Shown here: in pieces, positions 278-22,849 of the stretch
Layout: every line of letters starts with the position of its first letter
Numbering within the stretch: position 1 is the stretch's first letter
Origin: Macrostomum lignano
Lineage: Eukaryota
DNA length: 45,550 nt
NCBI GenBank assembly: GCA_002269645.1
Contig: NIVC01003695.1
Coordinates: 1 to 45,550, forward strand
Direction: 5' to 3'
Made by a program: the position numbers and the translations under genes
Notes under the pieces: model-generated
Database searches by the model: none
What the model was told of the DNA's origin: nothing
Seen by the model: the letters and a program-made list of their open reading frames with translations, nothing else

Positions 278-3200
278 AGACTTTCTGCCTCGTGGTTCCG
301 GCATTGTCACCAGGCGCCCGCTGATACTCCAGTTGTTGTACAATCCATCGGGTAGGAAGGCCTTTTTGACACAATAATTCAATAGTTAGTTACTGCTACT
401 GTTCCTTGACCTCTTACTGTTAGCAATCTAAGAGTTGCCCACATATTCCAAACCTCCCTGACCCATTGCCCTATTCAAGACCTTCCCTGACCCACCACCA
501 TCTTCAAGACATTCCCTGACCCCACCACCATCTTCAAGACATTCCCTGACCCACCACCATCTTCAAGACATTCCCTGACTCCACCACCATCTTCAAGACC
601 TTCCCTGACTCCACCACCATCTTCAAGACCTTCACTGGCTCCACCACCATCTTCAAGACCTTCCCTGACTCCACCACCATCTTCAAGACCTTCACTGACC
701 CCACCACCATCTTCAAGACCTTCACTGACCCACTGCCATCTCGAACACCCGCCCTGACCCACTGCCATCTCCAACACCCGCCCTGACCCCACTGCCGTCT
801 CCAACACCCGCCCTGACCCCACTGCCGTCTCCAACACCCGCCCTGACCCACTGCCGTCTCCAACACCCGCCCTGACCCCACTGCCATCTCCAACACCCGC
901 CCTGACCCCACTGCCATCTCCAACACCCGCCCTGACCCCACTGCCATCTCCAACACCCGCCCTGACCCCACTGCCATCTCCAACACCCGCCCTGACCCCA
1001 CTGCCATCTCCAACACCCGCCCTGACCCACTGCCATCTCCAACACCCGCCCTGACCCCACTGCCATCTCCAACACCCGCCCTGACCCCACTGCCATCTCC
1101 AACACCCGCCCTGACCCACTGCCATCTCCAACACCCGCCCTGACCCCCAACACCCGCCCTGACCCCACTGCCATCTCCAACACCCGCCCTGACTCCGCTG
1201 CGTTGGCAGCCGAGTACGCCGAGTTCGGCACCAGCGCGGCCGGAAGTACACCAACTTCGAGGAGGTCGCCAGGAGATCGAAGCGGAGACGGACCGGCTCA
1301 CGGGCCGCAACAAGGGCATCTCCAATGTGCCAATCATGCTGCGCGTGTTCAGCCCGCACGTGCTCAATTTGACCTTAGTTGACCTGCCCGGCATGACCAA
1401 AGTGGCTGTTGGCGACCAGCCGCCCGATATCGAGGTGCAAATCCGCACATGCTTCTGGAGTTCATCACCAAGGAGAACTGCCTGATTCTGGCCGTCAGCC
1501 CGGCCAACTCGGACCTAGCCAACTCCGATGCGCTCAAACTTGCCAAAGAGGTTGCGATTGTTTTTGCGTGCAAATATCGGCGCCATATTCATTTTGCAGG
1601 TGCGGAGTTATATTAATCTGCTACTGTTCGCTCCGCCAGGTGGACCCCGCCGGCACCCGCACCATCGGCGTCATCACCAAGCTGGACCTCATGGACCAGG
1701 GCACCGACGCCAGGGAGGTTCTGGAGAACAAGCTGCTGCCGCTTCGCCGCGGCTACATCGGCGTGGTCACGATCCAGAAGGACATCGAAGGTGAGACTGC
1801 TCACTGCTCAGACTCTACTCCACTGACTGCTCAGACTCTACTCCACTGACTGCTCAGACTCTACTCCACTGACTGCTCAGACTCTACTCCACTGACTGCT
1901 CAGACTCTACTCCACTGACTGCTCAGACTCTAATTCACCCTATAATGCCCATAGACCTCATCTACACAGCTCCCTGCTCCCTCTGAAACGTCACCCCAGG
2001 CCGCAAAGACATCAAGGCAGCCATGGCGCGGAGCGGAAGTTCTTCCTGTCGCACCCGTCCTACAGGCACATGGCGGAGCGCATGGGCACCCCGTACCTGC
2101 AGCGCTGCCTTAACCAGCAGCTCACCAACCACATCCGGGAGACGCTGCCTCCCTGCGCAGCGAGCTGCAGACCAAACTGCTAGCCATGGAGAAGGACTAC
2201 CAGGCCTACGCCAATTTTAGTCCCGACGATCCAGCATCAAGACCAAGGCGATGATGACGTAAGCCGCCGTTTGCCAGCTGTCTGGGGTTTTTCCGCTGGG
2301 CTGCCCGCGATCATCTTTCATCCATTCCTATAGGGAGGTTGTGGGGGTTTCCATCGAGCTGATGCACTCATTCCAAGGGGGGTTAAATGTGGGGGGTTTC
2401 CATTGAGGAAATGCTTAGGCGATCGCATGAAGCAAGCCAAAGTGGCCATCTTGCAGGATGATCAACCAGTTCACTGACGAGTTCACCCAGTCCATCGAAG
2501 GCTCCGGCGAAGTCAGCACCAAGGAGCTGTCCGGCGGAGCCAGAATCAATCGCATCTTTCACGAGAGATTCATGTACATGCTGCATCAGGTAAGATAATT
2601 AGCAGTGCGTGCATACTGAGCTGTCACCTTGTCAAGTGCTTTATTCAATTTTATAACTTGAGCCCGTCTTAAGCTGAGCCTAAGCTGTCCGATATTTAAT
2701 TTACCAGTGCTAGAGTACAAAGATTTTATCGCTACATATCGGATTCTTCCAGTGCTAGAGTACAAAGATTTTATCGCTACATATCGGATTCTTCCAGTGC
2801 TGGAGTACAAAGATTTTATCGCTACATATCGGATTCTTCCAGTGCTGGAGTACAAAGATTTTATCGCTACATATCGGATTCTTCCAGTGCTAGAGTACAA
2901 AGATTTTATCGCTACATATCGGATTCTTCCAGTGCTGGAGTACAAAGATTTTATCGCTACATATCGGATTCTTCCAGTGCTGGAGTACAAAGATTTTATC
3001 GCTACATGTCGGATTCTTCCAGTGCTGGAGTACAAAGATTTTATCGCTACATGTCGGATTCTTCCAGTGCTGGAGTACAAAGATTTTATCGCTACATGTC
3101 GGATTCTTCCAGTGCTGGAGTACAAAGATTTTATCGCTACATATCGGATTCTTCCTAAAATGTGTTTAGTAAACTGACAAAGTAAATATTTTTATAGCCA

Positions 3201-6200
3201 GAATAGTATAAGAAGAATTTATTAGAGATTTTATCAAAGGGCACTGGGCCAGAATAGAAGCAGAGGTCACTGAGCCAGAATAGAAGCAGAGGGCACTGAG
3301 CCAGAATAGAAGCAGAGGGCACTGAGCCAGAATAGAAGCAGAGGGCACTGAGCCAGAATAGAAGCAGAGGACACCGAGCCAGAATAGAAGCAGAGGGCAC
3401 TGAGCCAGAATAGAAGCAGAGGGCACTGAGCCAGAATAGAAGCAGAGGGCACTGAGCCAGAATAGAAGCAGAGGGCACTGAGCCAGAATAGAAGCAGAGG
3501 GCACTGAGCCAGAATAGAAGCAGAGGGCACTGAGCCAGAATAGAAGCAGAGGGCACTGAGCCAGAATAGAAGCAGAGGGCACTGAGCCAGAATAGAAGCA
3601 GAGGGCACTGAGCCAGAATAGAAGCAGAGGGCACTGAGCCAGAATAGAAGCAGAGGACACTGAGCCAGAATAGAAGCAGAGGGCACTGAGCCAGAATAGA
3701 AGCAGACGGCACTGAACACTTAACCGCTGCGGGAAAGCTCACAAATAAGTAATTTAATCCGCACAGCATGCCACTAACTCATTCTATTGTCACTTTAAAG
3801 CGTTTCGAAACTCATTTCTAGGCATCCCTGTTTGTAGGACTTCATGCTAAGCAGAGAGTGCGTTTTTATACAGTGCACTGATCCAAAAGAACTCTGCTTT
3901 TAATGCTTTGCATTGCCACCCATTCCAATGTAGCGTGTAAACAAATATTTCTAATACAGAAACTAACAGATTGTGTTTCAATTGTTCTTGAATTTTAATC
4001 ATTAGCCGTATCTAACTGCCCGTAGTTCACTGCAATTTACGGTGCGGCACTATTGGATAAAAAATGTAGCAGTGCTGTTGGATTGCTTATCCCCTGCTCT
4101 TTTCCTAGCTTTGTTCTGACACCATCTCAGCCACATAGGGTGATGTACAGCATCGAGACATTGCCTGGGTAGTCAGACAATTGGGCAAACACTGAGACAA
4201 ACAATTAAAAACACTGAGACAAACAATTGGACAGACACTGAGACAAACAATTGGGCAGACACTGAGACAAACAATTGGGCAGACACTGAGACAGACAATT
4301 GGGCAGACACTGAGACAAACAATTGGGCAGACACTGAGACAGACAATTGGGCAGACACTGAGACAAACAATTGGGCAGACACTGAGACAGACAATTGGGC
4401 AGACACTGAGACAGACAATTGGGCAGACACTGAGACAGACAATTGGGCAGACACTGAGACAAACAATTGGGCAGACACTGAGACAGACAATTGGGCAGAC
4501 ACTGAGACAGACAATTGGGCAGACACTGAGACAGACAATTGGGCAGACACTGAGACAAACAATTGGGCAGACACTGAGACAGACAGGCAGACACTGAGAC
4601 AAACAATTGGGCAGACACTGAGACAAACAATTGGACAGACACTGAGACAAACATAAAAACACAAAAGGACAAACACAAAGATGCACTTGTAGACACTTAC
4701 GCAGACACCAACACAAAACGACAGATAGACGAACAAATAGAGACAAAGACAGGCAGAAATAGTTCTGTCTCAGAGGCTGTTCTCACGCCATTAATGCACG
4801 CACAAATCGATTTTTGCAATCTTGAGTAGAAGTGGATTTCCAGCCGCACAGTCAAAATGGCCTCAACTTCGCTCCACTGCAGACCGAATCCGATGAGCGC
4901 GAGCTGCGCAAGGAGATCAGCTACACTATTCGCAATGTGCACGGCATCAGGTAGGAGCTCTGCTCTTCATCTGGTAACGGGTGTTTAGTGCCGGAGTCCT
5001 CTAAATCTATAATGGGATCCTTTTACTGTTTCCTTATTGCTTTCCGCACTAAAATCTAGAATCCATTCGAAACATTCCATCTTCCCGTGACTAACATCCC
5101 ATTTCCCATGTTGAGAATCTCATTTCCTATATTGAGAATCCCATTTCCCATGTTGAGAATACATTTCCCATGTTGAGAGTCCCATTTCCCATGTTGAGTG
5201 TCCCGTTTCCCATGTTAAGAGTCTCATTTCCCATGTTGAGAGTCCCATTTCCCATGTTGAGAGTCTCATTTCCCATGTTGAGAGTCTCATTTCCCATGTT
5301 AAGAGTCTCATTTCCCATGTTGAGAGTCCCATTTCCCATATTGAGAGTCCCCTTTCCCATGCAGAAAATCCCACACTGGGTGCACCCGATCCCGCAGGAC
5401 CGGCCTGTTCACTCCCGACATGGCATTCGAGCGCATCGTCAAGCAGCAGATCATGCGGCTGAAAGAGCCGACGCTGAAATGCGTGGACATGGTGATCGAG
5501 GAGCTCATCAACGTGGTGCACAAGTGCACGCAGCAGATGGCCAGCTACCCCAGGCTGCGCGAGGCCGTGGAGACCACCGTCACCAACCGGATCCGGGAGC
5601 AGGAGACCCGGGCCAAGACCCAGCTGATGCTGCTGGTGGACATCCAGCTGGCGTACATGAACACCAATCACGAGGACTTTATCGGCTTCGCCAAGTGAGT
5701 CTCGGGTTGCGTGGCCCGGATGCGAACACAATTCCCATTGCCGAATCAGTCATTGCGAATCTCACTTTTACCTTCAGCGCCCAGCAACGGACTGAGAGCA
5801 CCAGGAAGGAGCGAGTGGCGAACCAGGTGCGGCAGCTTATGCTGGGGGGTTGGGATAATAAAGCTGGGGGATTCGGTTCGGGGCAGTGTTGGCACCACTG
5901 CGATTTTTTATCGCTCAGCGATTTTTTATCGCTCAGCGATTTTTAATCGCTCAGCGATAATTTTGTCTGTTTTGCTCATTTCCTGCGATTTTTTGTGGAC
6001 ACCAGTCCTTTCAACTTTTTATCAAGTACTGTGTTTCATTTTGTGCTCAATTTAAGTGTCATGAATGTCATCAATATAGCGTGAGGCTGTGCAAGCCTCC
6101 GGTTTTGAAGCTCGGCGAAAGGAGATTGAGCATGCTGCGGTCGAGCGAGCACTGAAGAAAGCTGCTGACGAAACGGCTCGGCGAAAGAGACAGGCGGAGT

Positions 6201-9200
6201 TCGGCGCTCGATCTGTCCTGCCAAAGGTTCCAAAGAAAAAATGAACATCCACTGAAGAGCCTGCAGTTTTGCTTGACTAACGTTTGACTAGCCAAACAAA
6301 GATTCACGTAAAAGTATTTCTTTCCCTACAGTTACCGACATTGACCAACAATTTAAATATTAAAAGAATTCATTTTAGCTATATAGAATTGAAAACAGAT
6401 TCAGACAACTGGAATATAGCACAAAATTTAGTTGCAAAATTGTTATTACTTATTACTCATCAGCGGTCGTAGCGTCTTGTGTTTTTGTTGGTTGCTCGGT
6501 TCGGTTTCATAATGAACATCAGTAATCTATATTATACACTCAGCAACAGTCAAAACCGCCACCCTACCGAGAGAGGCGACTTCTCTCTCACCTTAACTGC
6601 AAGTGACGTAACTTGCGCCACGGCGTGGCTGGAGCTGGGTGAGAGTGAATGCAGGAGAGGGCAATCAGGGGATGCCCCATCTGCTTCTTTCACCCCACAT
6701 TAGACGGAGCAGGGTGGCTGGTGCGGTCGGAGTTCGCCTGACAATCCGCAGCAGACGTCGATTTGCCCTGGCTGTTGAGCCGCGGAGATCATGGCGCTGG
6801 CTGCCTATGGCTGCGTGCTGAACACTACCAGTATCTTGGGACTTCGTTAACAGCGCCGGAATTGTTGAACGTGATCGGCCAAATTGGCGAGCAACTGCGC
6901 TGATGGATGCACCAGCTTCTACTCGTAGCATGTCAACAGCGCGCCATCGTTCAGCGTCTGTCATATGCCTGACCATTGTCACGTGTACTGTTGCACCCCA
7001 AACCCCAACCTCAGTCCCTTTTGTACTCTCACCCTGGAATTCACTCTCACCTAGCTTTAGCCACGCCGTGGCGCAAGTTGCGTCACTTGCAGTTGAGGTG
7101 GGAGAGAGGTCGCCTCTCTCGGTGGGGTGGCGGTTTTGACTGTTGCTGAGTGTACGCTCGTATGTATGCCTGTCTTATCTTAAGAAAATGCTTGTGTTGT
7201 ATGACTACTTCACTGCTTCGGCGTAAATGAGAGTTGCATGCAGTTATTGCAAATTGTAGCAGTTCTTTCTGGTCAAATAGAAGATGGAATTAGAAATGGA
7301 AAGCTAAAAAATAAAGTTGTTTTCGCATACTGGCGCCTTCGGGGTTCGAGATGTGCTAGAGATGCGATGTGTGGGATATGCTAGAGGTGGGTATGTGATA
7401 TGCTAGAGATAGGGGAATGGGTATGGGATTTGGGATATGCCAGAGGTGGGATATGGGAAATAGGATCCATGAGATATTAGAGATGGGATCTCTGGAATTC
7501 TAGAGATGGGATCTCTGGGATGCTAGAGATGGGATCTCTGGGATGCTAGAGATGGGATCTCTGGGATGCTAGAGATGGGATCTCTGGGATTCTAGAGATG
7601 GGACACTGTAATAGTTTATGCTAGACTGGATCAGAAAATTGGGTGAGACAACATGGTTTGGTTTGCTGCTGTCACAATTATCATTATTATTCCTCTCTGT
7701 AAAACCGTCAAAGTGTCTGAATCTGAGCTGAGCAAATACCACTGAGAATTAAATATTCTGATTTATGGAATTCGTCTGCGCCCTCTGTACTTCAGCTGTG
7801 AGTACAGCCGTTTTTGCTGAGTTGCCCAACAAAATGTGAATTAATGAGAGGACTCAATCTGAGCTCATTATATATTTTTTTTTCGCGAGGCCCATATGCA
7901 GCAATCAGGCGGAGTTGTTCGCTTTTGCGCAGTGCACTGTACAGGCTCACAGTCATTCAAGTCGCCTCTCCTCTGTCCAGGTGATTCGCAAGGGCTATCT
8001 CACGCTCAACAATGTCTCCCTTATGCGCGGCGGCTCTAAGGAGTGCTGGTTTGTGCTCACCGCTGAGTCGCTCATGTGGTTCAAGGACGAGGAGGTGAGC
8101 TGACCGGCTGACTAGCTGACCCACTGATTCCTCAATGACCCACTGACTCCTTCCCTGAGCCACTGATTTTTCAATGACCCACTGACTCCTTCCCTGACCC
8201 ACCGATTCCTCAATGACCCACTGACTCCTTCCCTGACCCACCGATTCCTCAATGACCCACTGACTCCTTCCCTGACCCACTGATTCTTCAATGACCCACT
8301 GACTCCTTCCCTGACCCACTGATTCCTTTCCTGACCCACTGATTCTTCAATGACCCACTGACTCCTTCCCTGACCCACTGATTCTTCAATGACCCACTGA
8401 CTCCTTCCCTGACCCACTGACTCCTTCCCTGACCCACTGATTCTTCAATGACCCACTGACTCCTTCCCTGACCCACTGATTCTTCAATGACCCACTGACT
8501 CCTTCCCTGACCCACTGATTCCTTTCCTGACCCACTGATTCTTCAATGACCCACTGACTCCTTCCCTGACCCACTGAATCTTCAATGACCCACTGACTCC
8601 TTCCCTGACCCACTGATTCTTCAATGACCCACTGACTCCTTCCCTGACCCACTGATTCTTCAATGACCCACTGACTCCTTCCCTGACCCACTGATTCTTC
8701 AATGACCCACTGACTCCTTCCCTGACCCACTGATTCTTCAATGACCCACTGATTCCTTTCCTGACCCACTGATTCTTCAATGACCCACTGACTCCTTCCC
8801 TGACCCACTGAATCTTCAATGACCCACTGACTCCTTCCCTGACCCACTGATTCTTCAATGACCCACTGACTCCTTCCCTGACCCACTGATTCTTCAATGA
8901 CCCACTGACTCCTTCCCTGACCCACTGATTCTTCAATGACCCACTGACTCCTTCCCTGACCCACTGATTCTTCAATGACCCACTGACTCCTTCCCTGACC
9001 CACTGATTCTTCAATGACCCACTGCACTCCTTCCCTGACCCACTGACCGACCACATTGCCGCAGGAGCGCGAGAAAAAGTACATGCTGCCCCTTGACGGC
9101 CTGAAGATTCGAGACGGCGAGTCGCGCGGCCTGTTCGGCAAGAAGAACGTCTTCATGCTGTTCCACTCTGAAGGCCGGTGGGTGTTACGTATGCAATCTG

Positions 9201-12200
9201 TATGCAGTTTACAACTCAGCCGCTTATACCCTAAGCTGTGATATGATAAACAGCAGCCCTCCCATCTCCATCCCCCAGCAACACGTACAAAGACTACAAG
9301 ACGCTGGAGCTGGCCGCCGAGTCCGCAGACGAAGTGGACAGCTGGAAGGCGTCGTTTCTGCGTGCCGGCGTTTATCCCGAGCGGGAGAGCCGCGAAACGG
9401 ATGAGGTAAAGCTGCGTCTGGCATGAGTGGCTAGCTGGGTATATTTTGTCAATAATTGCTACTGTCAAGTAGTCCAAAGCGAGACTTTGTTGAGCAGTGT
9501 TAGTGTCGCGTGGGGTCTGTCTGGTTGCAAAAATGCAGTTGGCTGAGTTCGACGAGCCAGTTGGTCACGTGATCGTGCGGTCATACGGTCGCCAAATTAT
9601 CAAGTAGATGTAGGGCCCTATTGTACTTTTATTACTCGAATTCGGTCGTTGGTGTACTTTTATTGCTCATTAGTCTCTGTCAGATAGTCGCACATCTCTT
9701 TGTTGCTCTACTAGTACCTAAAGCAGCTATGATTGGCTATTGCTCTCACTCACTGGTTGCACTGAGAATGCTCAGCTATAATTGGCTATTGCTCTCACTC
9801 ACTGGTTGCACTGAGAATGCTCAGCTATAATTGGCTATTGCTCTCACTCGCTGGTTGCACTGAGAATGCTCAGCTATGATTGGCTATTGCTCTCACTCAC
9901 TGGTTGCACTGAGAATGCTCAGCTATAATTGGCTATTGCTCTCACTCGCTGGTTGCACTGAGAATGCTCAGCTATGATTGGCTATTGCTCTCACTCACTG
10001 GTTGCACTGAGAATGCTCAGCTATGATTGGCTATTGCTCTCACTCGCTGGTTGCACTGAGAATGCTCAGCTATAATTGGCTATTGCTCTCACTCACTGGT
10101 TGCACTGAGAATGCTCAGCTATGATTGGCTATTGCTCTCACTCACTGGTTGCACTGAGAATACTCAGCTATGATTGGCTATTGCTCTCACTCACTGGTTG
10201 CACTGAGAATGCTCAGCTATGATTGGCTATTGCTCTCACTCACTGGTTGCACTGAGAATGCTCAGCTATGATTGGCTATTGCTCTCACTCACTGGTTGCA
10301 CTGAGAATGCTCAGCTATGATTGGCTATTTCTCTCACTCACTGGTTGCACTGAGAATGCTCAGCTATAATTGGCTATTGCTCTCACTCGCTGGTTGCACT
10401 GAGAATGCTCAGCTATAATTGGCTATTTCTCTCACTCACTGGTTGCACTGAGAATGCTCAGCTATAATTGGCTATTGCTCTCACTCGCTGGTTGCACTGA
10501 GAATGCTCAGCTATAATTGGCTATTGCTCTCACTCGCTGGTTACACTGAGAATGCTCAGCTATAATTGGCTATTGCTCTCACTCGCTGGTTGCACTGAGA
10601 ATGCTCAGCTATGATTGGCTATTGCTCTCACTCACTGGTTGCACTGAGAATGCTCAGCTATGATTGGCTATTGCTCTCACTCGCTGGTTGCACTGAGAAT
10701 GCTCAGCTATAATTGGCTATTGCTCTCACTCACTGGTTGCACTGAGAATGCTCAGCTATGATTGGCTATTGCTCTCACTCACTGGTTGCACTGAGAATAC
10801 TCAGCTATGATTGGCTATTGCTCTCACTCACTGGTTGCACTGAGAATGCTCAGCTATGATTGGCTATTGCTCTCACTCGCTGGTTACACTGAGAATGCTC
10901 AGCTATAATTGGCTATTGCTCTCACTCACTGGTTGCACTGAGAATGCTCAGCTATGATTGGCTATTGCTCTCACTCGCTGGTTACACTGAGAATGCTCAG
11001 CTATAATTGGCTATTGCTCTCACTCGCTGGCTACACTGAGAATGCTCCACCGCCTCAGCAGCTCGGCGAAGATCCCACAGACTCGGACGGTCCGGGCCAG
11101 CAGCCCGACAGCTTGCGCGACCGGCAAGTTGAAATCATTCGCAGCCTGGTCAGCAGCTATTTCCAGATCTGCGTCTCCGAGCACAAAGACCTGTTCCCCA
11201 AGATCGTGGTGCACCTGCTGGTCAACTGCGTAGGGCTTGATGGGTCTTTGTGACCGCCTGTCTGGCTTCGCGGCTTGGGGGGGGGATATTCGCTGATGAT
11301 TTCACTCTGATTCCAGCTGCGATCACGCCTATGCTCCCAGATTGACTCACGCATTGCCTGATTGGCCCGCCACCCCAGCCCGAGCAGGACCTCGGCAGCA
11401 CGGATCCGCAGATGGAGCGCCAGGTGGAGACCATCCGCAACCTGGTCGAGTCCTACATGAAAATTGTGGACAAAACCCAGCGGGATATTGTGCCCAAGAC
11501 TGTCATTCACATTGTGGTCAATGAGGTAATGCCCTCGGAGCCATGACTGCCGTTCCCCTTCCTAATTGTGATTCCATCAATACTATGCATTGGCTTTAAC
11601 CACTCTAATGAACTGCAATTCACCAATGGATAGGGTTCTCAGCGCTTGTAGCCTTGAAAATTAGTGAACATGATTGATTAATGTTCAGCCCACCTGGCAG
11701 TGCCAATTGCATTCGTTTCATACCTGTCATTAGCCTAATCAGAAACCGAAGTTTCCGAAGTTTAGAGAATACCCAATTTAGAGAATATCAAATGTTAGCC
11801 TTATCTTGAAAAACCATTCCCAGCCTCAGCTTGTAGACCCAATCCCAGCCTTCAATGTACACCCAATCCCAGCCTCCGATGTACACCCAATCCCAGCCTT
11901 CAATGTACACCCAATCCCAGCTTCCAGTGTACACCCAATCCCAGCTTCCTGTGTACACCCAATCCCAGCTTCCAGTGTACACCCAATCTCAGCTTCCAGT
12001 GTACACCCAATCCCAGCTTCCAGTGTACACCCAATCCCAGCTTCCAGTGTACACCCAATCCCAGCTTCCAGTGTACACCCAATCTCAGCTTCCAGTGTAC
12101 ACCCAATCCCAGCTTCCAGTGTACACCCAATCCCAGCTTCCAGTGTACACCCAATCTCAGCTTCCAGTGTACACCCAATCCCAGCTTCCAGTGTACACCC

Positions 12201-15200
12201 AATCCCAGCTTCCAGTGTACACCCAATCCCAGCCTGCACTGTAGGCCAAATCCCACCCACCCGCCCCGCAGTTGAAGGACTTCCTGAAGTCCAGCATGCT
12301 GGCGCAGCTGTACGGCGGCTACGATCAGAACCAACTGATGGAGGAGTCGCCCGAGGAGGCGCAGCGCCGCGAGGAGACGCTGCGCATCTACAAGGCCACC
12401 AAGGAGGCGCTGAAGATCCTCAGTGACGTCTCGGCCAACACCACGCACACGCCGACTCCGCCGCCTGTGAAGGATGACTGGATCCAGCCGGACTCGATGC
12501 CCGCCCCGCAGCCTCCGACTCACGGCCGGCGAACCCCCGTTGGCGGCGGCCCGCCGTCTCAGCCGCCTCCTGTAGCCGGCCGGCCCGCCGTGCCCTCACG
12601 ACCGGCGCCCTCTGTACCGCGCCCTGGAGGCGCCGGGGCTCCCGGCGGTCAGCTGCCTCCGCCAATGGTGCCACAGTAAGTGCCCAGGCCTCTGGTGTCT
12701 TGGGGGTCTGCGATTTCCTGCATCCCCTATATTGATTGAATAGGCGATCCATGTGTTGCTTTTCTGTAGCTTGATTTGTTGCGCTTCGATTTTAGCTATT
12801 CGATTGGGCGCCAAACTGTGTTTAAAAATTCAATGTAATTTCACTATACAGTATTAGGACTCAGAAGCGCATATAATAAAGCGTTAAGGCACGCCAAACA
12901 GGGTGTCTGAGTAGCGCCAAACAGGGTGTCTGAGTAGCGCCAGACAGGGTGTCTAAGTTGCGCCAAACTGGGTGTTTAAATGGCGCCAGACAGGGTGTCT
13001 AAGTAGCGCCAAACAGGGTGTCTAATTAGCGCCAAACAGGGTGTCTGAGTAGCGCCAGACAGGGTGTCTAAGTTGCGCCAAACAGGGTGTTTAATTAGCG
13101 CCAAACAGGGTGTCTAAGTTGTGCCAAACAGGGTGTCTGAGTAGCGCCAAACAGGGTGTTTAATTAGCGCCAAACAGGGTGCCTAAATGGCGTCAAATAG
13201 GGCTGTTTAAATAGCGCCAAATAGGGGTGTTTAAACAGCACCAAAAGGGTGGTAAATGGCACCAAAAGGGTGGTAAATGGCACCAAAAGGGTGGTAAATG
13301 GCACCAAAAGGGTGGTAAATGGCACCAAAAGGGTGATAAATGGCACCAAAAGGGTGGTAAATGGCACCAAAAGGGTGGTAAATGGCACCAAAAGGGTGAT
13401 AAATGGCACCAAAAGGGTGGTAAATGGCACCAAAAGGGTGATAAATGGCACCAAAAGGGTGGTAAATGGCACCAAAAGGGTGGTAAATGGCGCCAAAAGG
13501 GTGATAAATGGCACCAAAAGGGTGGTAAATGGCGCCAAAAGGGTGATAAATGGCACCAAAAGGGTGGTAAATGGCGCCAAAAGGGTGGTAAATGGCACCA
13601 AAAGGGTGATAAATGGCACCAAAAGGGTGGTAAATGGCACCAAAAGGGTGGTAAATGGCGCCAAACATGGGAGTCCAAAAAGCGCCAAATAAAACGCCCA
13701 GAAGCGCGCCGAAAGAAGAATCAATAAAGTATGCATAAAAAACCGAAATAGGCGGTCTCCACTTGCATGGACTCGCTTGCATTCTTTACCTACCAACCCC
13801 ATCAGACATCGGTCAAAATCGCCAGCTCCTGAGTAAGTTGAACTGTTTTGCGGTCGCTTCCCGTTCTGACTGTCCCGTCTGCTGTGTCCGTGCTTTGAGT
13901 GCTGCTTTGAAAACCGTTGCACTCGCTTCGTCTACTGTCAGTCGCATCACAGTTCGGGATTTTATTGTTTAGAGCCAATAAAATTTTACTTGCCAATCGT
14001 ACTGGCCTTAAAGGCGCACTCGCTCGCACTGAACTCTTTGAACACGCGCTTGTGTAGGAAGCCGCTGGGCCAGCGGTCTGTTTCCACTGGCGCTTTTGGC
14101 TTTGAAGCCGCAGCCGCCGCTTCGTTGGCCGCGTCCTACCAGGCTGCCCAGCCGTTTTCAAAGCAGTAAGACTGTCATATTGGACCGCCTGCACCACCGC
14201 AATCCCTGCGGCTGGCAGTGCTGGATTGGATCTCTGGACTCGGATATATCATCTGTCTGTGTTATCTGTGCTTTAACGGTCTTGGATTTTTATATTTATA
14301 AAACTGACAAGTTAAGATGATTATGCATAAGAGCATTGGATAAAATTCTTATCCAGACAAAGATAAATATTCTTGCAGAATTTAGATTAGCAATTTTGTG
14401 TTCCTCCATTGGCTCTGCGCAGCAATACAATTAATTGCCAGCGAATCTTTTATTCGGACTGAAAAACTCCGATCTCATCTTGGTAGCAATTCGTCTCTCG
14501 GGCAGGACAAACTTTTTGGAGTCGGGATCTCGGCACAGGTCGGGACGGGTTCTCGGGACAGGTCGGGACGGGTTCTCGGGACAGGTCGGGACGGGATCTC
14601 GGGAAAACTCGGGACTGGATCTCCGGACAACTCGGGACGGGATCTCCGGACAACTCGGGACGGGATCTCCGGACAGCTTGGGACGGGATCTCCGGACAAC
14701 TTGGGACGGGATCTCGAGATAGCTCGGGACGGGATCTCGGGACAACTTGGAAAATCTCGGGACAACCTGGAAAAGCTCGGGACAACTTGGAAAAGCTCGG
14801 GACAACTCGGGATCTCAGGACAGCTCGGAACATCTCGGGACAGCTTGGGACGGGATCTCAGGAACACTCGGGATCTCAGGACAGCTCGGGACAGCTTGGT
14901 ACGGGATCTCCGGACAACTTGGGACGGGATCTCGAGATAGCTCGGGACGGGATCTCGGGACAACTTGGAAAATCTCGGGACAACCTGGAAAAGCTCGGGA
15001 CAACTTGAAAAAGCTCGGGACAACTCGGGATCTCAGGACAGCTCGGAACATCTCGGGACAGCTTGGGACGGGATCTCAGGAACACTCGGGATCTCAGGAC
15101 AGCTCGGGACAGCTTGGTACGGGATCTCAGGACAACTTGGGATCTCAGGATAACTCGGGATCTCAGGACCGCTCAGGACAACTCGGGATCTCGGGACAAC

Positions 15201-16915
15201 TCAGGATCTCGGGACAGCTTGGGACGGGATCTCAGGACAACTCGGGATCTCAGGACAACTCGGGATCTCGGGACAGCTCCGGACGGGATCTCGGGACAAC
15301 TCGGGATCTCAGGACAACTCGGGATCTCAGGACCGCTCGGGAAAACTTGGGATCTCGGGACGGGAACTCGAGACAGGATCTCGGGATCTCAAGACAGAAT
15401 CTCATGACAACTCGAGACGAGATCTCAGTACTTGATTTGGCCATAATCACAATCGGAACATCCATAATTACAAACTTTTACTCCATTACTCTACTGCGAG
15501 CGTAACAGCCTTCAGACTGTGAACCACAGGCTCAGAAGAGATATCTGCACAGCTGTTTAGCATATTTATTATACTTGAGAAAAATCTTCCGCTTTCAATT
15601 CTTCAAACATTTTTTCTTTTTCGCTATCTCAACAATAATTTAGAAGCTTGCATACTGCCTAAATAGTCACATTTTCAAAAACTCCTCCCTCAACCAGTCA
15701 AGATTTCCGTGGCAGGATTCTGGAATGGAGATGGAATCCCATTCTAGCACTGCCCGGAATCCCCCTAAAGTCGCAGCTGGCACTCAGCTAAGCTTCAATC
15801 CGACTGCCTTTTGCTCTCTATTTAACCGGCTGATCAATGCGGTGGAAATGTTTCAACTGGATACTTGCTACACGCTACTTACTACTGCCTGCTCTTCTTC
15901 AGCAGTAGTGCAATACGCTTATTAGACGTATTTTTGCTATTTGTTCAATTTCCGTCACCGATTGTAGGCGAGCTGTGAATGACAGCCACGGCCTGCCGCC
16001 GCCCCTGCTGCCTGCGTGAGTAGCGAGCCGCCGGGCCCCTCGCTTCCCTCATCGGCTTTTTTATCCTCGCTCATTTTTATTTGCCTGAGTGGCATTCTGT
16101 TGCTTGATCGCATGCTCCTTTTTGCTTTAGAAGCAGTCAGATTTAATTGCCAATATTTCCTTAAGTATTATTTTTATTTTAAAGTATACTTTTCACTGCA
16201 TACAAACACAAGTTTATGTCTTGCATGCTCGTATGAAAATATTTTGGCAAATTATACTCACCCACTCATTATGGCTGTTGTGCCACCCTCCCAGATCCTC
16301 AGTTGCTGTACCAGCCTCCCAGATCCTCAGTTGCTGGGCCAGCCTCCCAGATCCTCAGTTGCTGGGGCAGCCTCCAAGATCCTCAGTTGCTGGGCCAGCC
16401 TCCCAGATCCTCAGTTGCTGGGCCAGCCTCCCAGATCCTCAGTTGCTGGGCCAGCCTCCAAGATCCTCTGTTGCTGGGCAAGCCTCCCAGATCCTCAGTT
16501 GCTGGGCCAGCCTCCAAGCTCCTCAGTTGCTGGGCCAGCCTCCCAGAGTGTCAGTTGCTGAGGCCAGCCTCCCTGAGTGTCAGTTGCTGAGGCCAGCCTC
16601 CCAGATCCTCTGTTGCTGGGCCAGCCTCCCAGATCCCCAGTTGCTGGGCCACCGCCGCCCTCCCATGCCCAGGGTGCGGGGCGCCAGACCCAGCACCAGG
16701 ATCAGTATTGCATGTTCGTGTTGTTGCAAAGCCAAAAAGCGGCACATTTCTCATAGACTCCGAGCTATCGTATACTAGGATTCGACTCTGCTTGTCTAGA
16801 AAGCTCGCATAGAAACTGTTTCAGCGGTTCGGCAGCCGACCCCCCCCCTGCACCGTCCCGCAGGCGGCCAACATCCGGCACGCCGCCCATTCCGTCCAGG
16901 CCGAACATGGGCTGA
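278..16915 (+). CDS. DNM1: Classical dynamin (GTPase-middle-PH-GED-PRD), multi-exon, 5'-partial
   Basis: Manual GT-AG splicing with matching phases: 278-351 ([19 protein letters not shown]), 1210-1550 ([12 protein letters not shown]), 1640-1790 (TKLDLMD), 2000-2258, 2457-2589 ([15 protein letters not shown]), 4883-4950, 5398-5694 ([11 protein letters not shown]...[11 protein letters not shown]), 5778-5826, 7981-8094, 9065-9177 and 9279-9405 (PH domain), 11059-11229 or 11379-11525 (GED), 12272-12675, 15968-16015, 16825-16915 (ends [10 protein letters not shown]). The PH domain plus PRD indicates classical dynamin rather than Drp1. Several 1-bp deletions lie in 1210-2258. The symbol denotes the DNM1/2/3-shibire orthology group. 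Confidence 0.95.
458..1195. repeat. 30-bp minisatellite with two related unit types
   Basis: CCCTGACCCCACCACCATCTTCAAGACCTT grades into CCCTGACCCCACTGCCATCTCCAACACCCG. Ends about 14 nt before the acceptor at 1209. Confidence 0.95.
1803..1931. repeat. 23-bp minisatellite, about 5.5 copies
   Basis: ACTGCTCAGACTCTACTCCACTG. Confidence 0.95.
2703..3155. repeat. 45-bp minisatellite, about 10 copies
   Basis: CCAGTGCTGGAGTACAAAGATTTTATCGCTACATATCGGATTCTT. Confidence 0.95.
3241..3716. repeat. 26-bp minisatellite, about 18 copies
   Basis: GGGCACTGAGCCAGAATAGAAGCAGA. Confidence 0.95.
4168..4655. repeat. 24-bp minisatellite, about 20 copies
   Basis: ACAATTGGGCAGACACTGAGACA(A/G). Confidence 0.95.
5095..5362. 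repeat. 21-bp minisatellite, about 12 copies
   Basis: ATTTCCCATGTTGAGAGTC(C/T)C. Confidence 0.95.
6537..7152 (-). mobile_element. Non-autonomous Tc1/mariner deletion derivative in a dynamin intron
   Basis: Ends CACTCAGCAACAGTC...GACTGTTGCTGAGTG, with imperfect TIRs of about 115 bp and TA on both flanks (6535-6536, 7153-7154). Internal minus ORF 6665-6982 ([13 protein letters not shown]...[16 protein letters not shown]...[11 protein letters not shown]) resembles the Tc1 N-terminal HTH region. No DDE domain is present. Confidence 0.88.
7430..7605. repeat. 23-bp minisatellite with degenerate 5' flank
   Basis: CTAGAGATGGGATCTCTGGGAT(G/T). Confidence 0.9.
8115..9046. repeat. 39-bp minisatellite filling a PH-domain intron, about 23 copies
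   Basis: GACCCACTGATTCTTCAATGACCCACTGACTCCTTCCCT. Confidence 0.95.
9722..11047. repeat. 49-bp minisatellite, about 27 copies
   Basis: CTCAGCTAT(G/A)ATTGGCTATTGCTCTCACTC(A/G)CTGGTTGCACTGAGAATG. Confidence 0.95.
11059..11229 (+). CDS. Dynamin GED exon A (divergent duplicate, candidate alternative exon)
   Basis: cctcag| acceptor, 171 nt, phase 0-0, |gtaggg donor. Encodes [57 protein letters not shown], colinear with exon B. Confidence 0.8.
11379..11525 (+). CDS. Dynamin GED exon B (canonical)
   Basis: ccccag| acceptor, 147 nt, phase 0-0, |gtaatg donor. Encodes [49 protein letters not shown], which matches the classical dynamin [18 protein letters not shown] motif. Confidence 0.92.
11815..12237. 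repeat. 24-bp minisatellite, about 17 copies
   Basis: GTGTACACCCAATCCCAGCTTCCA. Confidence 0.95.
12890..13665. repeat. Compound 23-bp then 21-bp minisatellite
   Basis: AGCGCCAAACAGGGTGTCTGAGT followed by AAATGGCACCAAAAGGGTG(G/A)T. Confidence 0.95.
14520..15420. repeat. Degenerate 9-bp-based satellite with a 218-bp higher-order duplication
   Basis: CTCGGGA(C/T)-type monomers. The blocks starting at 14747 and 14965 are near-identical. Confidence 0.9.
15968..16015 (+). CDS. Dynamin PRD mini-exon ([15 protein letters not shown])
   Basis: ttgtag| acceptor and |gtgagt donor, 48 nt, phase 2-2. In frame with 12272-12675 and 16825-16915. Confidence 0.7.
16285..16645. repeat. 28-bp minisatellite, about 12 copies
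   Basis: CCTCCCAGATCCTCAGTTGCTGGGCCAG. Confidence 0.95.
16633..16704 (+). CDS. Possible optional dynamin PRD exon ([23 protein letters not shown])
   Basis: ctcccag| acceptor in phase 2 and Pro-rich translation. Weak donors at 16705 (gtattg) or 16714 (gttcgt) both keep the frame. Confidence 0.35.
16825..16915 (+). CDS. Dynamin terminal PRD exon
   Basis: gtttcag| acceptor in phase 2. Encodes [29 protein letters not shown], with a PxxP/PSRP SH3-ligand motif typical of dynamin tails. Confidence 0.75.
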
Positions 16916-19900
16916 TTGTTTCTGGGCGCCTAGCAACCGATCGAGGCCTTGATTACGAGTTTCGAACATAAAAGATTTGCTTAACATAAATTATCACTTT
17001 ATTGTTTATATCTATTCAAAGTTATCAGAGCTGTAAACTGAAGCTGCAGCTAGTTGAAATTATGAATTAATTATGCTGCCAGCCTGCTGATTGTGAGCTT
17101 CTGTGTGATAATTCAATCAAATAATGCTTACTCAGCTCCCCATTTTTCAGGTTTAGTATTTGTTTTGTAGAAACCAATTCTCCCATTCTGTTCAATTTGC
17201 TATCTGCGATTCAAGCAATTTATTTGATTTTCTGTTGCTAACTGAAATGCGACTTATTGAGCGTCACAATCACTTCGATTTTCGTTTGCCAATCTGTCAC
17301 CATAGTAACCTGCGTACACCTGTCGTTGTAGCCGGAGTACTCAACATAAATAACTTTATCTACTGATATTAGCAACCACATTGATGTTATTAGTTTGATG
17401 CTTACCTTGGCCCTGACCAGCCATGACCCTGCAAAAAAAAATTGACGTTGTGTCGCGCACAAACCATTTTGCCTACGAGTTATTACGATTTGTTAGTCTT
17501 CTGTACGAGTCAGTCAATGAATACTTTATTAGAAGCTACGAGGCACAATTCATATACTGTCGGTAATTAGTTTAAAAACGTAAAAGAATGAAGCATGAGA
17601 ATAGAAAATCTGTTAACATTCTGCTAGTACTACTTATTTCATGAGTAAGCGTAAGCGACAAGGCCAGGTGCATCTAGGAATTTAGGTAATTTTTGTTTAC
17701 TACACATCGTGCTGTGTTGGCCCGCAATATTGATCGTTATTTTTATTTTCATGTAGGTTATTGAGTTGTTATTCTAATATGCTATCCGCTGACTGCCAGT
17801 TGTAAAAGTTGTCACCAATAACCCAAGTATACTTGTAGTACGCAGGTGGCAATTGACTGATGCATGTAACTCCGCTCGATTCCTGTAATGCACTGTGGCT
17901 AATTTAGTCGCATTTTCAATCTGTTTTGCAGTAGCCTGGAACCCGAAACATCCGCCATGCAGGCTCGCATATTCCATCCTAACTTCAGTCGGTTCCTCAT
18001 TGTAAAATGCTTAAAGATGTTCGATACTGGTGGATCCCGCTGCTTAATTAATTCATTTCGATTCCAATTGTCTGCAGGTGAAGAATGTCTGGCCAATTCT
18101 GATTATATTAGTACCGGCTATTATTATTCGGCGCCAACCGTACTTGTACTAATTTGCCTCATCGTATATCAACTACAATGTATTATTCCATGATATATAC
18201 TAATTAATTGATACTAAATGGCTTTTCATGCTTTCGTTGTCTGCATAAATCAATCAACTCTGCGCTTTAGCTGGGCACAATGGATCTCCACTGTCGATTA
18301 TAATTTGCACTAATATCACCTGTAACTCGATTCCTTGACCAACTTTCCCATTCCCTGCCCATTGAGTTTCAAGCCTGACCATCCTCAGAGAGCGCACAAT
18401 TTGCCCCAAAGTTTGTTCTTTCTACAAACGGCTAAAAATAATAGCGGATCGATCTGCGCGTGAATGCGTACTTCTATATCTTATTTACACGCATATACAC
18501 ATTTACGACATGATGGTTATATTAATAAATTGATTTTTCTTGCGCGCTACTTTTGCGCTTTCGTCGTGCGGTTTATTCATTTGGCGCATAAGTTCTCTCA
18601 GTTGATGCAAAATTTTTAGGCTTTTTGATATTTTGCGCATCAGCGCGGGGTGTGTAGTTTTCTTGTCCCTTTCATATAGCTTATACATCACATGTACGAG
18701 TACATGTAGTAGTTTCTTAGTAGCGGTTCTAGGGTTTTGTAGAATAGCTTTGTTTATTGTATGTTACAAGTTGCAGATTAAAGTACTCGTGCTTTGTTTC
18801 AATGCACAATTACATGTATATCCGGGCGATAATGCAATTCAGGATCCAGGTCCAAAAAATTACTAAAAAAATAAATCTTTCGCCATATTCTTGATTTAAA
18901 ATGACAATCGGTTTGCAGCTTAAATAAGCAAAAAACAACTTCAAAAAAGGCTAAAAGCCAACTACTACGTGCAATAGTTTGTTAGCTTTGATCAGGATCA
19001 ATAACTCAGGACCACCGTAGTATAGTGTAGTATAACATGGTGGTCCTTGAGTTAACTACTGAAGAAATCTAGGAATGTATTTTCCTCATTAATGTGGATT
19101 GTCGTGGAGGTGAGTCAAAATTGTTGTCTTTGATCGTTAATAAGCAAGAAAAGATAATTAGGTCTAATCTAAAATTAAAATATAACAGATAATTTTTTAC
19201 TTTTTTCTAAAATAAAATGCTTTGAAGATGCCAATAAAATAAATTAAACATTTATTTTGTTAAAGTCTACCAAAGATAAGAAAATTCAAAGCTTAAGTCT
19301 CTTTCGTCATAACTTTTTGTCACTACTGTTTTACTAATACTAGCTTGACACAAAAATTATTTACAGTATCATTTATCCTGTGGTGTATTCAAAATGTATT
19401 CACTCAAGGCAGTCAGCTATGTGCAGCGGACCATTCAGGCTACGTCTAAATTATCTCCTCTCAGTGCAACGGTAAGCAACAGCAACAAGCTATTAACTTC
19501 TCAAATGTTTATTCGACTAGTCCGTGCTCTATAACATTTTGATTTTTGTGATTGTGGGGGAAGAGCCAGCGAACTAGCCACGAAGGTACCATGGTGAACG
19601 GCGAAGTGCAAGCAGAATGAAAGGAATCTGATGTCTAATTGCTAATACTACTTGAGTCTACTCTAAAGTCTGTTAAACTAATAACTTAGGATTAAGGGTT
19701 CAAAGGCTTTAGTTTAGATGGCCTAGTTGAAAAAAATCTATACTTTAAAATTTGAAATATGCCTATTAGACCGATTGCTATATGCTTTTTGTTGTATATT
19801 TTCCATTTCATTCATAATATAATAATTTAAATTTACTTAAAAGGCCTAGTTTTGTAAAATGCAATATGCATAGCCATAGGCTAGACCAAAGGTTGGCAAA

Positions 19901-21293
19901 CTCCAGCCTGAACACATCCTTCAAGTCTGGCCCACAGCACCCTTACCATCTAACAATGTAAAAATAGCCTACAAATCAATTTTGTGTTGAACTTGAAGCA
20001 TTAAACTTTACAAGTAAAATTAGCTTTTGACCCATTAGGCCTATTTCTCAACCCATAGTCTGGATCATGTTGGGTGCATGCCCATACAAAAAAAATTATG
20101 AGTGCATGCAGAAAAAAATTAAGTGCACACCCATTCTTAAAACTATACTGGTATTGCAGTAATAAATGTCCTTTTTATGTTGTGACAATAAACAACCTTT
20201 TTTGAATTATATAATAATATATCCTTTTGGGAAATAATTTGGTTGATTTTTATGCTTTTTAGGCAATAATATTTATTACAAAAAATCAATACATACAAAT
20301 ACTTGTTTCAATGCGCATGCTTTATTATGAGCTTAAAAAATCTTTTTTTCTATTTCACAATAACTTTTCTACTAGATTTTATAAAAGTGCATGCCAGGTG
20401 TGCATACACACTTTTCTTAGGAGTGATGCATGCCTACTTTTGGCATGCAAGGCCAATGTATGCCTGAAGTTTTGGGCATATACTACAATTACATAATCCA
20501 GAGTGTGGTTATATGTTTTTACATGGGGTTACATTGTTGGTTGTATTTGGTCTAATGATTTGGTTTTTTTTGTTTATTACTTTTTTTAAAATGTTTGACT
20601 TTTTTTCAAAAAAATATTATCAAGAAAATATTTAAAAATGTATTGATTGAAAAACATTTAGTAAAATATTGTTATTGTATTCTGATAAAATACTAAAAAC
20701 ACTTTAAAATCTGTTTTTTTTTCTCTCAAAAAATGATTTCATAATAAAAATTATATTTAAAATATTAAAAAATTCAACCTGTATGACCAATGCCTTGCAT
20801 TGCAAGCATCAATTTTTTATGTAGAATTTATTGTAGATTGTTTTATATGTATTCATTTTTAATTTTGTTGCCCTCATTTTTGTGGCCCACAATTTAAAAC
20901 ATGACCCCCCCATGACATGTATATTGGTATTGCTACCAGATTAGGAACACAAAATTGGTATCTAAAGGTACCTAAAAATGAAGAAAATGAGTATAAAAAT
21001 CAACAAGACACAATTTAAAAGCACAATAAATACTTTATAGCAAAGCAATAAATTGTTAAAAGATATAATATGCTAAAATGACATTTAATACCATAGCATA
21101 GACATATAAAAAGATTGAAATAAAAAACTATTTGTTACATGTTTTTAATTAAAAGAAAAATGTCTTTTTTTCTTTCTTTTATCCAATCTACTATTTATTT
21201 TGTTATTTACTTTTTTTTGCTTTTCTCTTTAATATGTTCATATAGTTTTTTGACTTGCATTTTCTGACATTTTTTCAATTATTGTGTATGTTA

Positions 21294-22213
21294 TAGTGTT
21301 CCGCCGTAATTACGGCTATGGCTATGGCAAATTACGGCTACGACACTTTTGAAGCCATATTTTCATTACGGATTACGGTTACGGACATATTTTCAGCTTA
21401 CGGTTACGGTTACGGATTACGGAGATTTTTCTAGACTTGCCATAATTGGTAGCCGTAACAAAAATTATTTATTTTTAACTGTTTGGTGTTGCAAAAGAAA
21501 TTTTTTTATATCAACTTCAACCAGTTTTCATTTTTTTTACTAGTTATTATTTTTTTTACTTTTTTAAGTTTCTAAATATCTACGAAACTTTTTGAAAACG
21601 AAAAACGATTTTTTCCTGAATTTTCTCATTAGGCATACAGCATAGCATAGCGATAGCATGATAGCAGCGAGACAGAGAGAGCCAGTCAAAGCCTGCAAGA
21701 GACTAAGAATCTGGCATTTTGAAGTCATCGGAAATTTTGAAGCAGTTTTATTTGAACAAATTCATATATTTATTTAATGATATTAAACATACACATTGAC
21801 CTTGGCACGTCAGTCATACATCCATATTGTAGCGAAACAAAACAGAATCACAACACAGAAAACTGAAAAAGGCACCAAGCACACAATTGCATACAACAAT
21901 GCTATAGAATACTTAGATAAAGATAATAAGATATTATATTTACGAAAAAAATAAATGAATATTAATGCATGAACGAACAACAAGTAGGTTTTATTGCTAT
22001 CCTTTTATCCTTTTTATCTGTCCTTTTCTGTCTGCCCCACTTTTCATGCAAAAATATCAATTTTTGTTATACATTACGGCTATGGTTACGGCAAATTACA
22101 GTTACGGACTTTTTTAGCCCGTAATGAAAGCAAAATTCGGCTACGGAAGTTGCTTCTTTCTTACGGCTACGGTTACGGTTACGGAGGTCAAAACTCGCGG
22201 CGGCGGAACACTA
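21294..22213. mobile_element. hAT-family MITE (920 bp)
   Basis: Perfect 13-bp TIR TAGTGTTCCGCCG / CGGCGGAACACTA. Exact 8-bp TSD GTATGTTA (21286-21293, 22214-22221). Clustered subterminal TTACGG/CTACGG motifs at both ends and no ORF. Confidence 0.9.
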
Positions 22214-22849
22214 GTATGTTAATAGATTGCAGTTCTTATGGGAAAAATACATGAAAGTCATACAAGTCAAAGAAATTGGGACAATAAAATGATCATCACT
22301 TTTTTATTTTCCTAGGCTAATTTTCATGAACTAATTGTTTTTTAAAACTCTTCTCAATGTTTGCATTTTATTGTGTAGATCTTATTGAGAGGTTTTGGAA
22401 AATATTTAGTTTATAAAAATAGGTCCAAAAAGTTATTGTGACAATTTCTTAGATTTTTATGTATTTTTTATCATAAGGACTGTGATCTATTGAATGCATA
22501 CAAAAATTGAATAAATAAATAAAATTAAATGAAATATTTTCAATGCACCAAGGCTAGGGTATTAAATGTCATTTTAGTATATTATTATTTCTTTCAACAA
22601 TTTATTGATCCCCTTAAAGCATTTATTGTGCTTTTGAATTATTTTGTTTACTTTTATATTATTTTACTTAGTTTTAGGTGCACACTCTGTTCTTAATCTA
22701 GTAGCAATACTGATATACATGATATTAGGGGAGCATGTTTCAAATGTCTGAGCAAAAATGTGAAGGGCCGTCCATTGCATTTTAAATGTCTCTTGTTTGG
22801 TAGTGCTTAGAGTAAAAGTAAAAATGCCATCCCTCCCTCCCTTGTCCAG

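Follow-up and report, generated by a model that had tools for sequence, protein, structure and literature searches.

Does a dynamin gene of the flatworm Macrostomum lignano carry two interchangeable versions of the exon that encodes the first part of its GED stalk helix? The question is raised by contig NIVC01003695.1 of assembly GCA_002269645.1, which was analyzed over its whole length of 45,550 nucleotides (the window) and in which two similar exons, called here A and B, lie side by side at positions 11059–11525. Using a human DNM1 sequence, a classical dynamin gene was mapped on the + strand from about position 276 to at least 12677; the context of the exon pair is a classical dynamin with a PH domain and a PRD. 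An original prediction, made from the DNA alone, had described the pair as two neighbouring phase 0-0 GED exons that might be used in a mutually exclusive manner. The features around the pair are the following.

9279..9405, + strand: upstream constitutive exon encoding the end of the PH domain and the linker; donor GAG/GTAAAG; ends in phase 0.

9724..11047, no strand: 49-bp minisatellite, 27 copies, occupying most of the intron 5' of exon A.

11059..11229, + strand: exon A, diverged duplicate of the GED exon; 171 nt, 57 codons, phase 0-0.

11230..11378, + strand: A-B intron; 149 nt, GC 0.58.

11379..11525, + strand: exon B, canonical GED exon; 147 nt, 49 codons, phase 0-0.

11832..12255, no strand: 24-bp minisatellite, 17.7 copies, in the intron 3' of exon B.

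12272..12677, + strand: downstream constitutive exon encoding the remaining GED and the start of the PRD; begins with LKDFLKSS.

Exon A is bounded by the acceptor cctcag/CAG and the donor TGC/GTAGGG, and exon B by the acceptor ccccag/CCC and the donor GAG/GTAATG. The downstream exon has the acceptor cgcag/TTG, starts in phase 0 and ends with the donor CAG/GTAAGT; phase 0 was found at every junction from 9405 through 12272. At exon A the acceptor is of the NAGNAG type (cagcag) and offers an alternative start at 11062. The acceptor tracts of both exons are C-rich, like those of the other exons of the gene. The GTAGGG donor of exon A lies within the local norm, because GTAGG-type donors are apparently also used at the 3' ends of two constitutive exons of the gene, one near 338 and the other at 4951. 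Both minisatellites come close to an acceptor, the 49-bp array ending 11 nt 5' of that of exon A and the 24-bp array 16 nt 5' of the one at 12272. The translations of the two exons are identical to those of the original prediction and their AG/GT sites are usable, which confirms its description of the pair.

The relationship between the two exons was evaluated by similarity searches. When exon A was compared to the window with tblastn, exon B was matched with E=9e-10 and no third copy of the GED helix was detected. On the Pfam GED profile PF02212, whose gathering score is 21.4, exon A alone reached 30.7 bits (E=3.7e-7) and exon B 38.2 bits; joined to the downstream exon, the A form scored 81.1 bits and the B form 88.4 bits. 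The human DNM1 sequence matched exon A at 36% (E=2e-6) and exon B at 69% (E=4e-14). Exon B is 88% identical to the exon at 15491–15643 of an M. lignano dynamin locus on contig NIVC01001832.1 (L001), and the upstream exon is 86% identical to the exon at 14697–14822 of the same locus. These data show that A and B are splice-competent tandem duplicates of the GED exon.

The encoded segment aligns to DNM1 648–692 in solved dynamin structures (4uud, 3snh, 3zvr, 5a3f, 6dlu). It comprises the PH-GED linker followed by the first two-thirds, counted from the N-terminus, of the GED stalk helix (alpha4), and corresponds to residues ~640–692 of human DNM1. It had been proposed that this segment belongs to the self-assembly stalk, and the mapping agrees, as the segment falls on N-terminal alpha4 and includes the equivalent of I690. 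Mutations I690K and K694A in the N-terminal GED inhibit self-assembly (PMC2171915). The equivalents of H687 and I690 (V in both exons) are common to A and B, together with all family-invariant positions; exon A is divergent yet intact, as had been noted, and keeps RQVE, IR, LV, SY, D--PK, H and VN. Differences between A and B are found mainly at polar positions (T->I, N->S, E->S, K->Q, D->V, K->S, T->E, Q->H, T->I and E->C). Mean hydrophobicity is +0.12 for A and -0.12 for B, and the amphipathic moment is 0.18 and 0.31, respectively. Exon A may alter a polymerisation interface or the docking of the PH domain. The Drp1/Vps1-like SYF signature that had been seen in exon A did not hold, since it comes down to one residue (M to F) and the exons that match A best are those of classical dynamins. 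Among the best eight HMMER matches to exon A whose sequence was inspected, all were classical-dynamin exons of the 'DPQLERQVE...' type, barring one repeat protein, and none was Drp1-like. The match to that repeat protein (P0243), which is unrelated, was rejected as spurious.

Exons A and B could be aligned over a 38-codon core (114 nt) with no indel and 54% nucleotide identity (46% divergence); identity at codon positions 1, 2 and 3 was 61, 68 and 32%. Non-synonymous divergence (dN) between them was 0.56 and synonymous divergence (dS) 1.3–2.3 (Nei-Gojobori, ~25 synonymous sites), as compared to dN=0.08 and dS=0.92 between exon B and its M. lignano counterpart. A neutral A together with a constrained B would give an expected dN/dS near 0.5. 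Because synonymous sites are few and saturated, the ratio was set aside for simulation tests. Neutral decay was simulated under the Hasegawa-Kishino-Yano (HKY) model with intron base frequencies, starting from a B-type exon and proceeding to the observed divergence at positions 1+2, in 4000 replicates. The core of exon A is free of stop codons, as were the cores of 34% of the neutral replicates. Hydrophobic residues of B are retained in A at 15 of 16 positions (simulated 10.9 +/- 1.8, P=0.015), the BLOSUM62 sum is 92 (simulated 56.7 +/- 12, P=0.0015) and the GC content at third codon positions (GC3) is 0.84 (simulated 0.61 +/- 0.07, P=0.0015). Not one of the 4000 replicates (0/4000) was jointly stop-free and equal to exon A in hydrophobic retention and BLOSUM score.

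Further measures of coding constraint were obtained from the exons themselves. Hydrophobicity is still correlated between A and B across the 19 positions that distinguish them (r=0.74, permutation P=3e-4), and the helical hydrophobic moment has kept its direction (263 vs 239 degrees for A and B). GC content by codon position is 0.65/0.33/0.82 in A and 0.61/0.27/0.80 in B, and 0.42–0.58 in the flanking introns. None of the marks of a decayed duplicate (stops, frameshifts, splice-site loss, equal divergence across codon positions) is present in exon A. Purifying selection is indicated for both exons, for A by the simulation, GC periodicity and hydrophobicity and for B by dN/dS. Since stop-freedom, hydrophobic retention and substitution score were jointly unmatched in the simulation, we conclude that, over much of its history, exon A was shaped as a coding exon. 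At the sequence level, it bears the features of a protein-coding exon that evolved, for at least that part of its history, to fill the structural slot of B. Neutral decay, which according to the original prediction would have spoken against a functional exon A, is rejected by the simulation for the history of the exon as a whole.

Candidate mutually exclusive exons are recognized by adjacency, similar length, the same reading frame, conserved splice sites and sequence homology. Like the members of mutually exclusive clusters that arose by tandem exon duplication, A and B are adjacent and homologous, of similar length (171 vs 147 nt), in the same phase and flanked by intact splice sites, and from this we infer that they could be mutually exclusive. 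That exon A is a currently used alternative exon has in our judgement a little better than an even chance. Exon A, which arose by an old tandem duplication of constitutive exon B and has been kept as a splice-competent coding exon, would then replace B in a minority or tissue-specific mRNA through the putative junctions 9405^11059/11062 and 11229^12272. In the A isoform, the linker and the initial ~37 residues of helix alpha4 in the stalk (human DNM1 ~640–692) would be exchanged, with the helix register, the buried hydrophobics and the family-invariant residues expected to stay unchanged. Its exposed face would be less charged and more hydrophobic (T->I, E->S, K->Q, D->V, K->S, T->I, E->C). 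Stalk-stalk or stalk-PH contacts, and hence assembly behaviour, might be altered as a result.

Several observations weigh against current, mutually exclusive use of exon A. No steric hindrance is expected between A and B, as the 149-nt intron is spliceable; this is deduced from an intron of 80 nt that the same gene apparently has at 1554–1633. No spliceosome incompatibility was found, all sites being GT-AG. The lengths of A and B are divisible by three, and the frame would therefore be kept under dual inclusion as well as under dual skipping. It had been anticipated that the 149-nt spacer would not force exclusivity and that dual inclusion would stay in frame, and both statements are upheld. 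No inverted repeats of >=12 nt were detected in 9406–12271, and no docking RNA duplex between intron segments stood out beyond multiple testing, their energies being unremarkable. The best duplex, in which the 49-mer array pairs with the downstream intron (z=-3.3), fails over 8 tests and would loop out both exons. The pair differs in this from known mutually exclusive clusters, since it shows neither steric hindrance, nor U2/U12 incompatibility, nor frameshift with nonsense-mediated decay, nor competing RNA pairing. As no cis device was found in the window, exclusivity would need a regulated choice of splice sites. The dN/dS between A and B is not decisive by itself and leaves a neutral A branch possible, and a recent loss of exon A use may be compatible with its sequence. 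In exons 1215–2262, at least seven frame-breaking single-base gaps were counted relative to M. lignano coding sequence; if these 5' frame breaks are real, the entire gene would be dead.

The distribution of exon A points in the same direction. At the M. lignano locus L001 there is a single GED exon (15491–15643), separated from the upstream exon end at 14822 by a 668-nt intron without A. No relic of exon A was detected in this intron at the protein or DNA level, the Smith-Waterman score being no better than that of shuffled sequences. L001 may be an orthologue or a paralogue of the window gene, and the absence of A there weighs accordingly. A single GED exon and no second copy were likewise found in the loci of Fasciola gigantica, of Paragonimus skrjabini miyazakii and of the sea slug Plakobranchus (a mollusc). 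A word-indexed search of 5.8 billion proteins gave no candidate for exon A, and an exhaustive HMMER scan with exon A returned genomic read-through open reading frames (ORFs) only and no predicted protein that uses it; both negatives are weak evidence, since proteins of the source genome are evidently missing from the sets searched. An initial metagenome scan with exon A gave no match, and exon A is absent from every gene model inspected. The original prediction had held that absence of exon A in relatives would count against it. Such absence was indeed observed at L001 and in the two trematodes, and similar pairs were found on two other animal contigs, described below.

Some candidates from these searches were rejected. 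Low-identity matches obtained with the 166-residue GED region were genomic read-through ORFs (of vertebrate DNM1-like and other dynamin genes) and not alternative exons; all proteins obtained with this region were shorter than ~300 aa, and none came from Macrostomum. A Paragonimus kellicotti protein with three GED stretches (P0241, KAF6779292) was discarded as an assembly or annotation artefact. On the corresponding contig, LOND01000373.1 (L085, 230–11774), the GED exon is present in three identical copies, the upstream exon is duplicated too and 1358 N are found. On the strength of these three features, the triplicate was attributed to scaffolding and not to an exon array.

How exon A could be explained otherwise was considered in the light of the same data. 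It might be a pseudo-exon, either formerly functional or constrained and no longer spliced, or never used and surviving by chance. The absence of any transcript or protein match for A in the databases searched, its absence at L001 and in other flatworms, a dN/dS that taken alone fits a neutral A branch, a donor (GTAGGG) weaker than that of B (GTAATG) and the failure to find an exclusivity mechanism are all in keeping with this explanation. Neutrality over the whole history is nevertheless rejected by hydrophobic retention, by the conservativeness of substitutions and by GC3 (0/4000 replicates joint on stop-freedom, retention and BLOSUM). Moreover, no indel is seen over 114 nt despite 46% divergence, both splice sites are intact and the coding-type GC periodicity is kept. 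Given these signs of constraint and the intact sites, a pseudo-exon fits only with a recent loss of use, and we regard it as unlikely rather than negligible. Exon A could also be a cassette exon included together with B, which would place a second 57-residue linker-plus-helix in the stalk. The spliceable 149-nt intron, the lengths in multiples of three and the lack of anything in cis that prevents joint inclusion would allow it. Against this, no tandem helix was seen among hundreds of dynamins retrieved, bar read-through ORFs and one assembly artefact, A keeps exactly the residues for the slot of B, and the four-helix stalk, judging from solved dynamin structures, would have no room for a fifth helix; we consider a cassette very improbable.

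Two further explanations concern the gene copy and the assembly. The whole window dynamin might be a pseudogene, such as a paralogue undergoing decay in a polyploid genome, which would leave the A/B pair with no present function. The argument for it lies in the single-base gaps of exons 1215–2262, which include a local loss where GVVNRSQKD became GVVTIQKD, so that the conserved NRSQ stretch of the GTPase domain is gone. In the same gap-bearing exons, however, substitutions relative to M. lignano amount to 7.7/7.2/42.5% by codon position, a pattern that reveals strong purifying selection. In nearly all gap events it is the window that lacks bases, as is usual with long-read consensus error. No frame break was found in the later exons examined (tblastn and ungapped comparisons), and a comparable frame error occurs in the M. 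lignano assembly itself, at the TGLFTPDM exon. From the strongly synonymous substitution pattern, long-read consensus error is the likely cause of the gaps, rather than pseudogenisation, and we give the dead-gene explanation a slim chance. Finally, A and B could be mis-joined alleles or collapsed copies of one exon. The assembly is error-prone and the P. kellicotti gene model shows identical triplicates that came from scaffolding. Near-identity, as in P. kellicotti, would however be expected of alleles or of recent assembly duplicates, whereas 46% of nucleotides and roughly every second residue are different between A and B, and the two exons lie in distinct intron sequence with separate splice sites. 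An artefact of this kind has hardly any chance of being the explanation.

Similar pairs were found on two other contigs, by the exhaustive HMMER scan with exon A and then by a metagenome scan. Their exons are as follows.

L004 (Logan SRR30767268, 40% GC): upstream copy A' at 1005–1163, 39-nt intron, canonical copy B' at 1203–1349; phase 0, GT-AG.

L043 (metagenome contig JAAUYG010207926.1): upstream exon end at 2678, upstream copy A'' at 2949–3101, 341-nt intron, canonical copy B'' at 3443–3592, downstream exon from ~3968; all exons in phase 0 with GT-AG sites.

The remaining 78 metagenome loci have one canonical GED exon each. The canonical exons of L004 and L043 look spiralian. In the window, L004 and L043 the order is the same, with the diverged copy 5' and the canonical copy 3'. 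The hydrophobic pattern is kept in the upstream copy of all three pairs, and that copy exceeds the canonical one in hydrophobicity and falls below it in amphipathicity. When submitted to the neutral simulation, the upstream copy of L004 exceeded expectation on hydrophobic retention, while that of L043 exceeded it on identity, substitution score and GC3 only (hydrophobic retention P=0.15). Exon A is 39% identical to A' and to A'' and ~47% identical to B-type exons (partly manual counts). Since A is no closer to A' and A'' than to B-type exons, the three pairs may stem from independent duplications just as well as from a common one. A conserved His is replaced by Arg in A' and A'' and kept in A, and a rare Phe before the PK motif is common to A and A' (a single character). 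Taken together, the three pairs leave us with a tentative proposal, to which we would give clearly less than an even chance: several spiralian dynamins may have duplicated the N-terminal GED helix exon, repeatedly or anciently, with copies that would be mutually exclusive and a more hydrophobic, less amphipathic upstream copy that would alter polymerisation or auto-inhibition in particular cells.

Exons 2 and 3 of alpha-tropomyosin are mutually exclusive through steric hindrance. The 39-nt intron of L004 fits such a steric block of A'-B' joining, whereas the mechanism is inapplicable to the 149-nt intron of the window. Micro-introns of ~32 nt are spliced in some flatworms (PMC4040987), hence steric exclusion in L004 is not proven. 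The L004 intron (1164–1202) is open and in frame, so that gene callers read through both exons, which results in protein P0242.

The closest known system is the exon pair 10a/10b of vertebrate dynamin, which lies in the middle domain, is absent from invertebrate dynamin, invertebrates having one isoform, and encodes a 46-residue segment including residue 408 in which 14 of 46 residues distinguish the two forms; self-assembly is impaired by a mutation located in one exon of the pair (PMC2916854). The original prediction had placed the known pair in the middle domain, in agreement with this report, and A/B at DNM1 648–692 is a distinct site. Both in DNM1/DNM2 10a/10b and in A/B, tandem homologous same-phase exons of a classical dynamin encode one helix-forming segment of the stalk, with isoforms that differ at a minority of residues in 10a/10b and at ~20 of 38 in A/B. 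The two systems differ in position (middle domain vs GED ~640–692) and in lineage (vertebrate vs flatworm); moreover, 10a/10b are expressed and conserved across vertebrates, whereas A/B are known here from DNA alone. In the window, the middle-domain exon (5396–5692) is single. No description of a GED exon pair in dynamin was found in the literature searched, which covers only vertebrate 10a/10b, so that the pair is apparently undescribed, as had been supposed. A/B thus presents itself as a plausible and undescribed candidate for a mutually exclusive GED exon pair.

The dynamin stalk sets the balance between the tetramer and the polymer around the membrane neck. The only natural isoform switch of the stalk that we found described is that of vertebrate 10a/10b, where a single mutation causes epilepsy in mice. 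If exon A is used as proposed, A/B would be an invertebrate counterpart of 10a/10b on the partner helix of the stalk, and this second, independent switch would show that evolution repeatedly tunes assembly by swapping a stalk helix. It would also provide natural helix variants for structure-function work. Exon A further flags a class of exons that annotation pipelines skip and, if it is unused, illustrates for how long the appearance of function can persist in a duplicated exon.

The closest database relative of the window gene is M. lignano BOX15_Mlig002684g1, with 71% identity overall and ~86–88% in the PH-end and GED exons. Third-position divergence from it is ~0.45 and the dS of exon B is ~0.9. 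The window dynamin is therefore distinct from the BOX15_Mlig002684g1 gene copy and may be either an old paralogue or the gene of another macrostomid species. At the TGLFTPDM exon of L001 (9974–10000), M. lignano reads QNGPVHPDMAFE, an apparent frameshift that is probably the reason for the start of the annotated protein P0001 at MAFETIV. Introns of the window gene are apparently present at 1554–1633 and ~1771–1990 (one with an unusual GTTGCG donor), and L001 has a single 756-nt exon at 5720–6475, which suggests that the two genes have diverged by intron gain or loss. An open frame at 16757–16915 ends with a stop, and its translation is similar to the C-terminal end encoded by a Macrostomum dynamin transcript (P0007, ...VPQIPARPNMG). 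It is probably the last dynamin exon, which would extend the gene over ~16.6 kb of the window.

Long minisatellite arrays seemingly fill almost all introns of the dynamin gene (~490–1200, 2660–3740, 4140–4650, 5100–5340, 8100–9020, 9724–11047, 11832–12255, 13225–13690 and 14400–15500). Their periods were measured for two arrays (49 bp x27 and 24 bp x17.7), and the others were recognized as periodic six-frame translations only. Further downstream, a short piece at 27372–27620 (+) gave no Pfam match; its peptide resembles what we take to be the C-terminal tail of mitochondrial Hsp70 (mortalin). Between the two, 3' of the probable last dynamin exon, an AT-rich block extends over 17000–23000 with a GC content of 0.27–0.38 and is set off abruptly between flanks of GC ~0.5.

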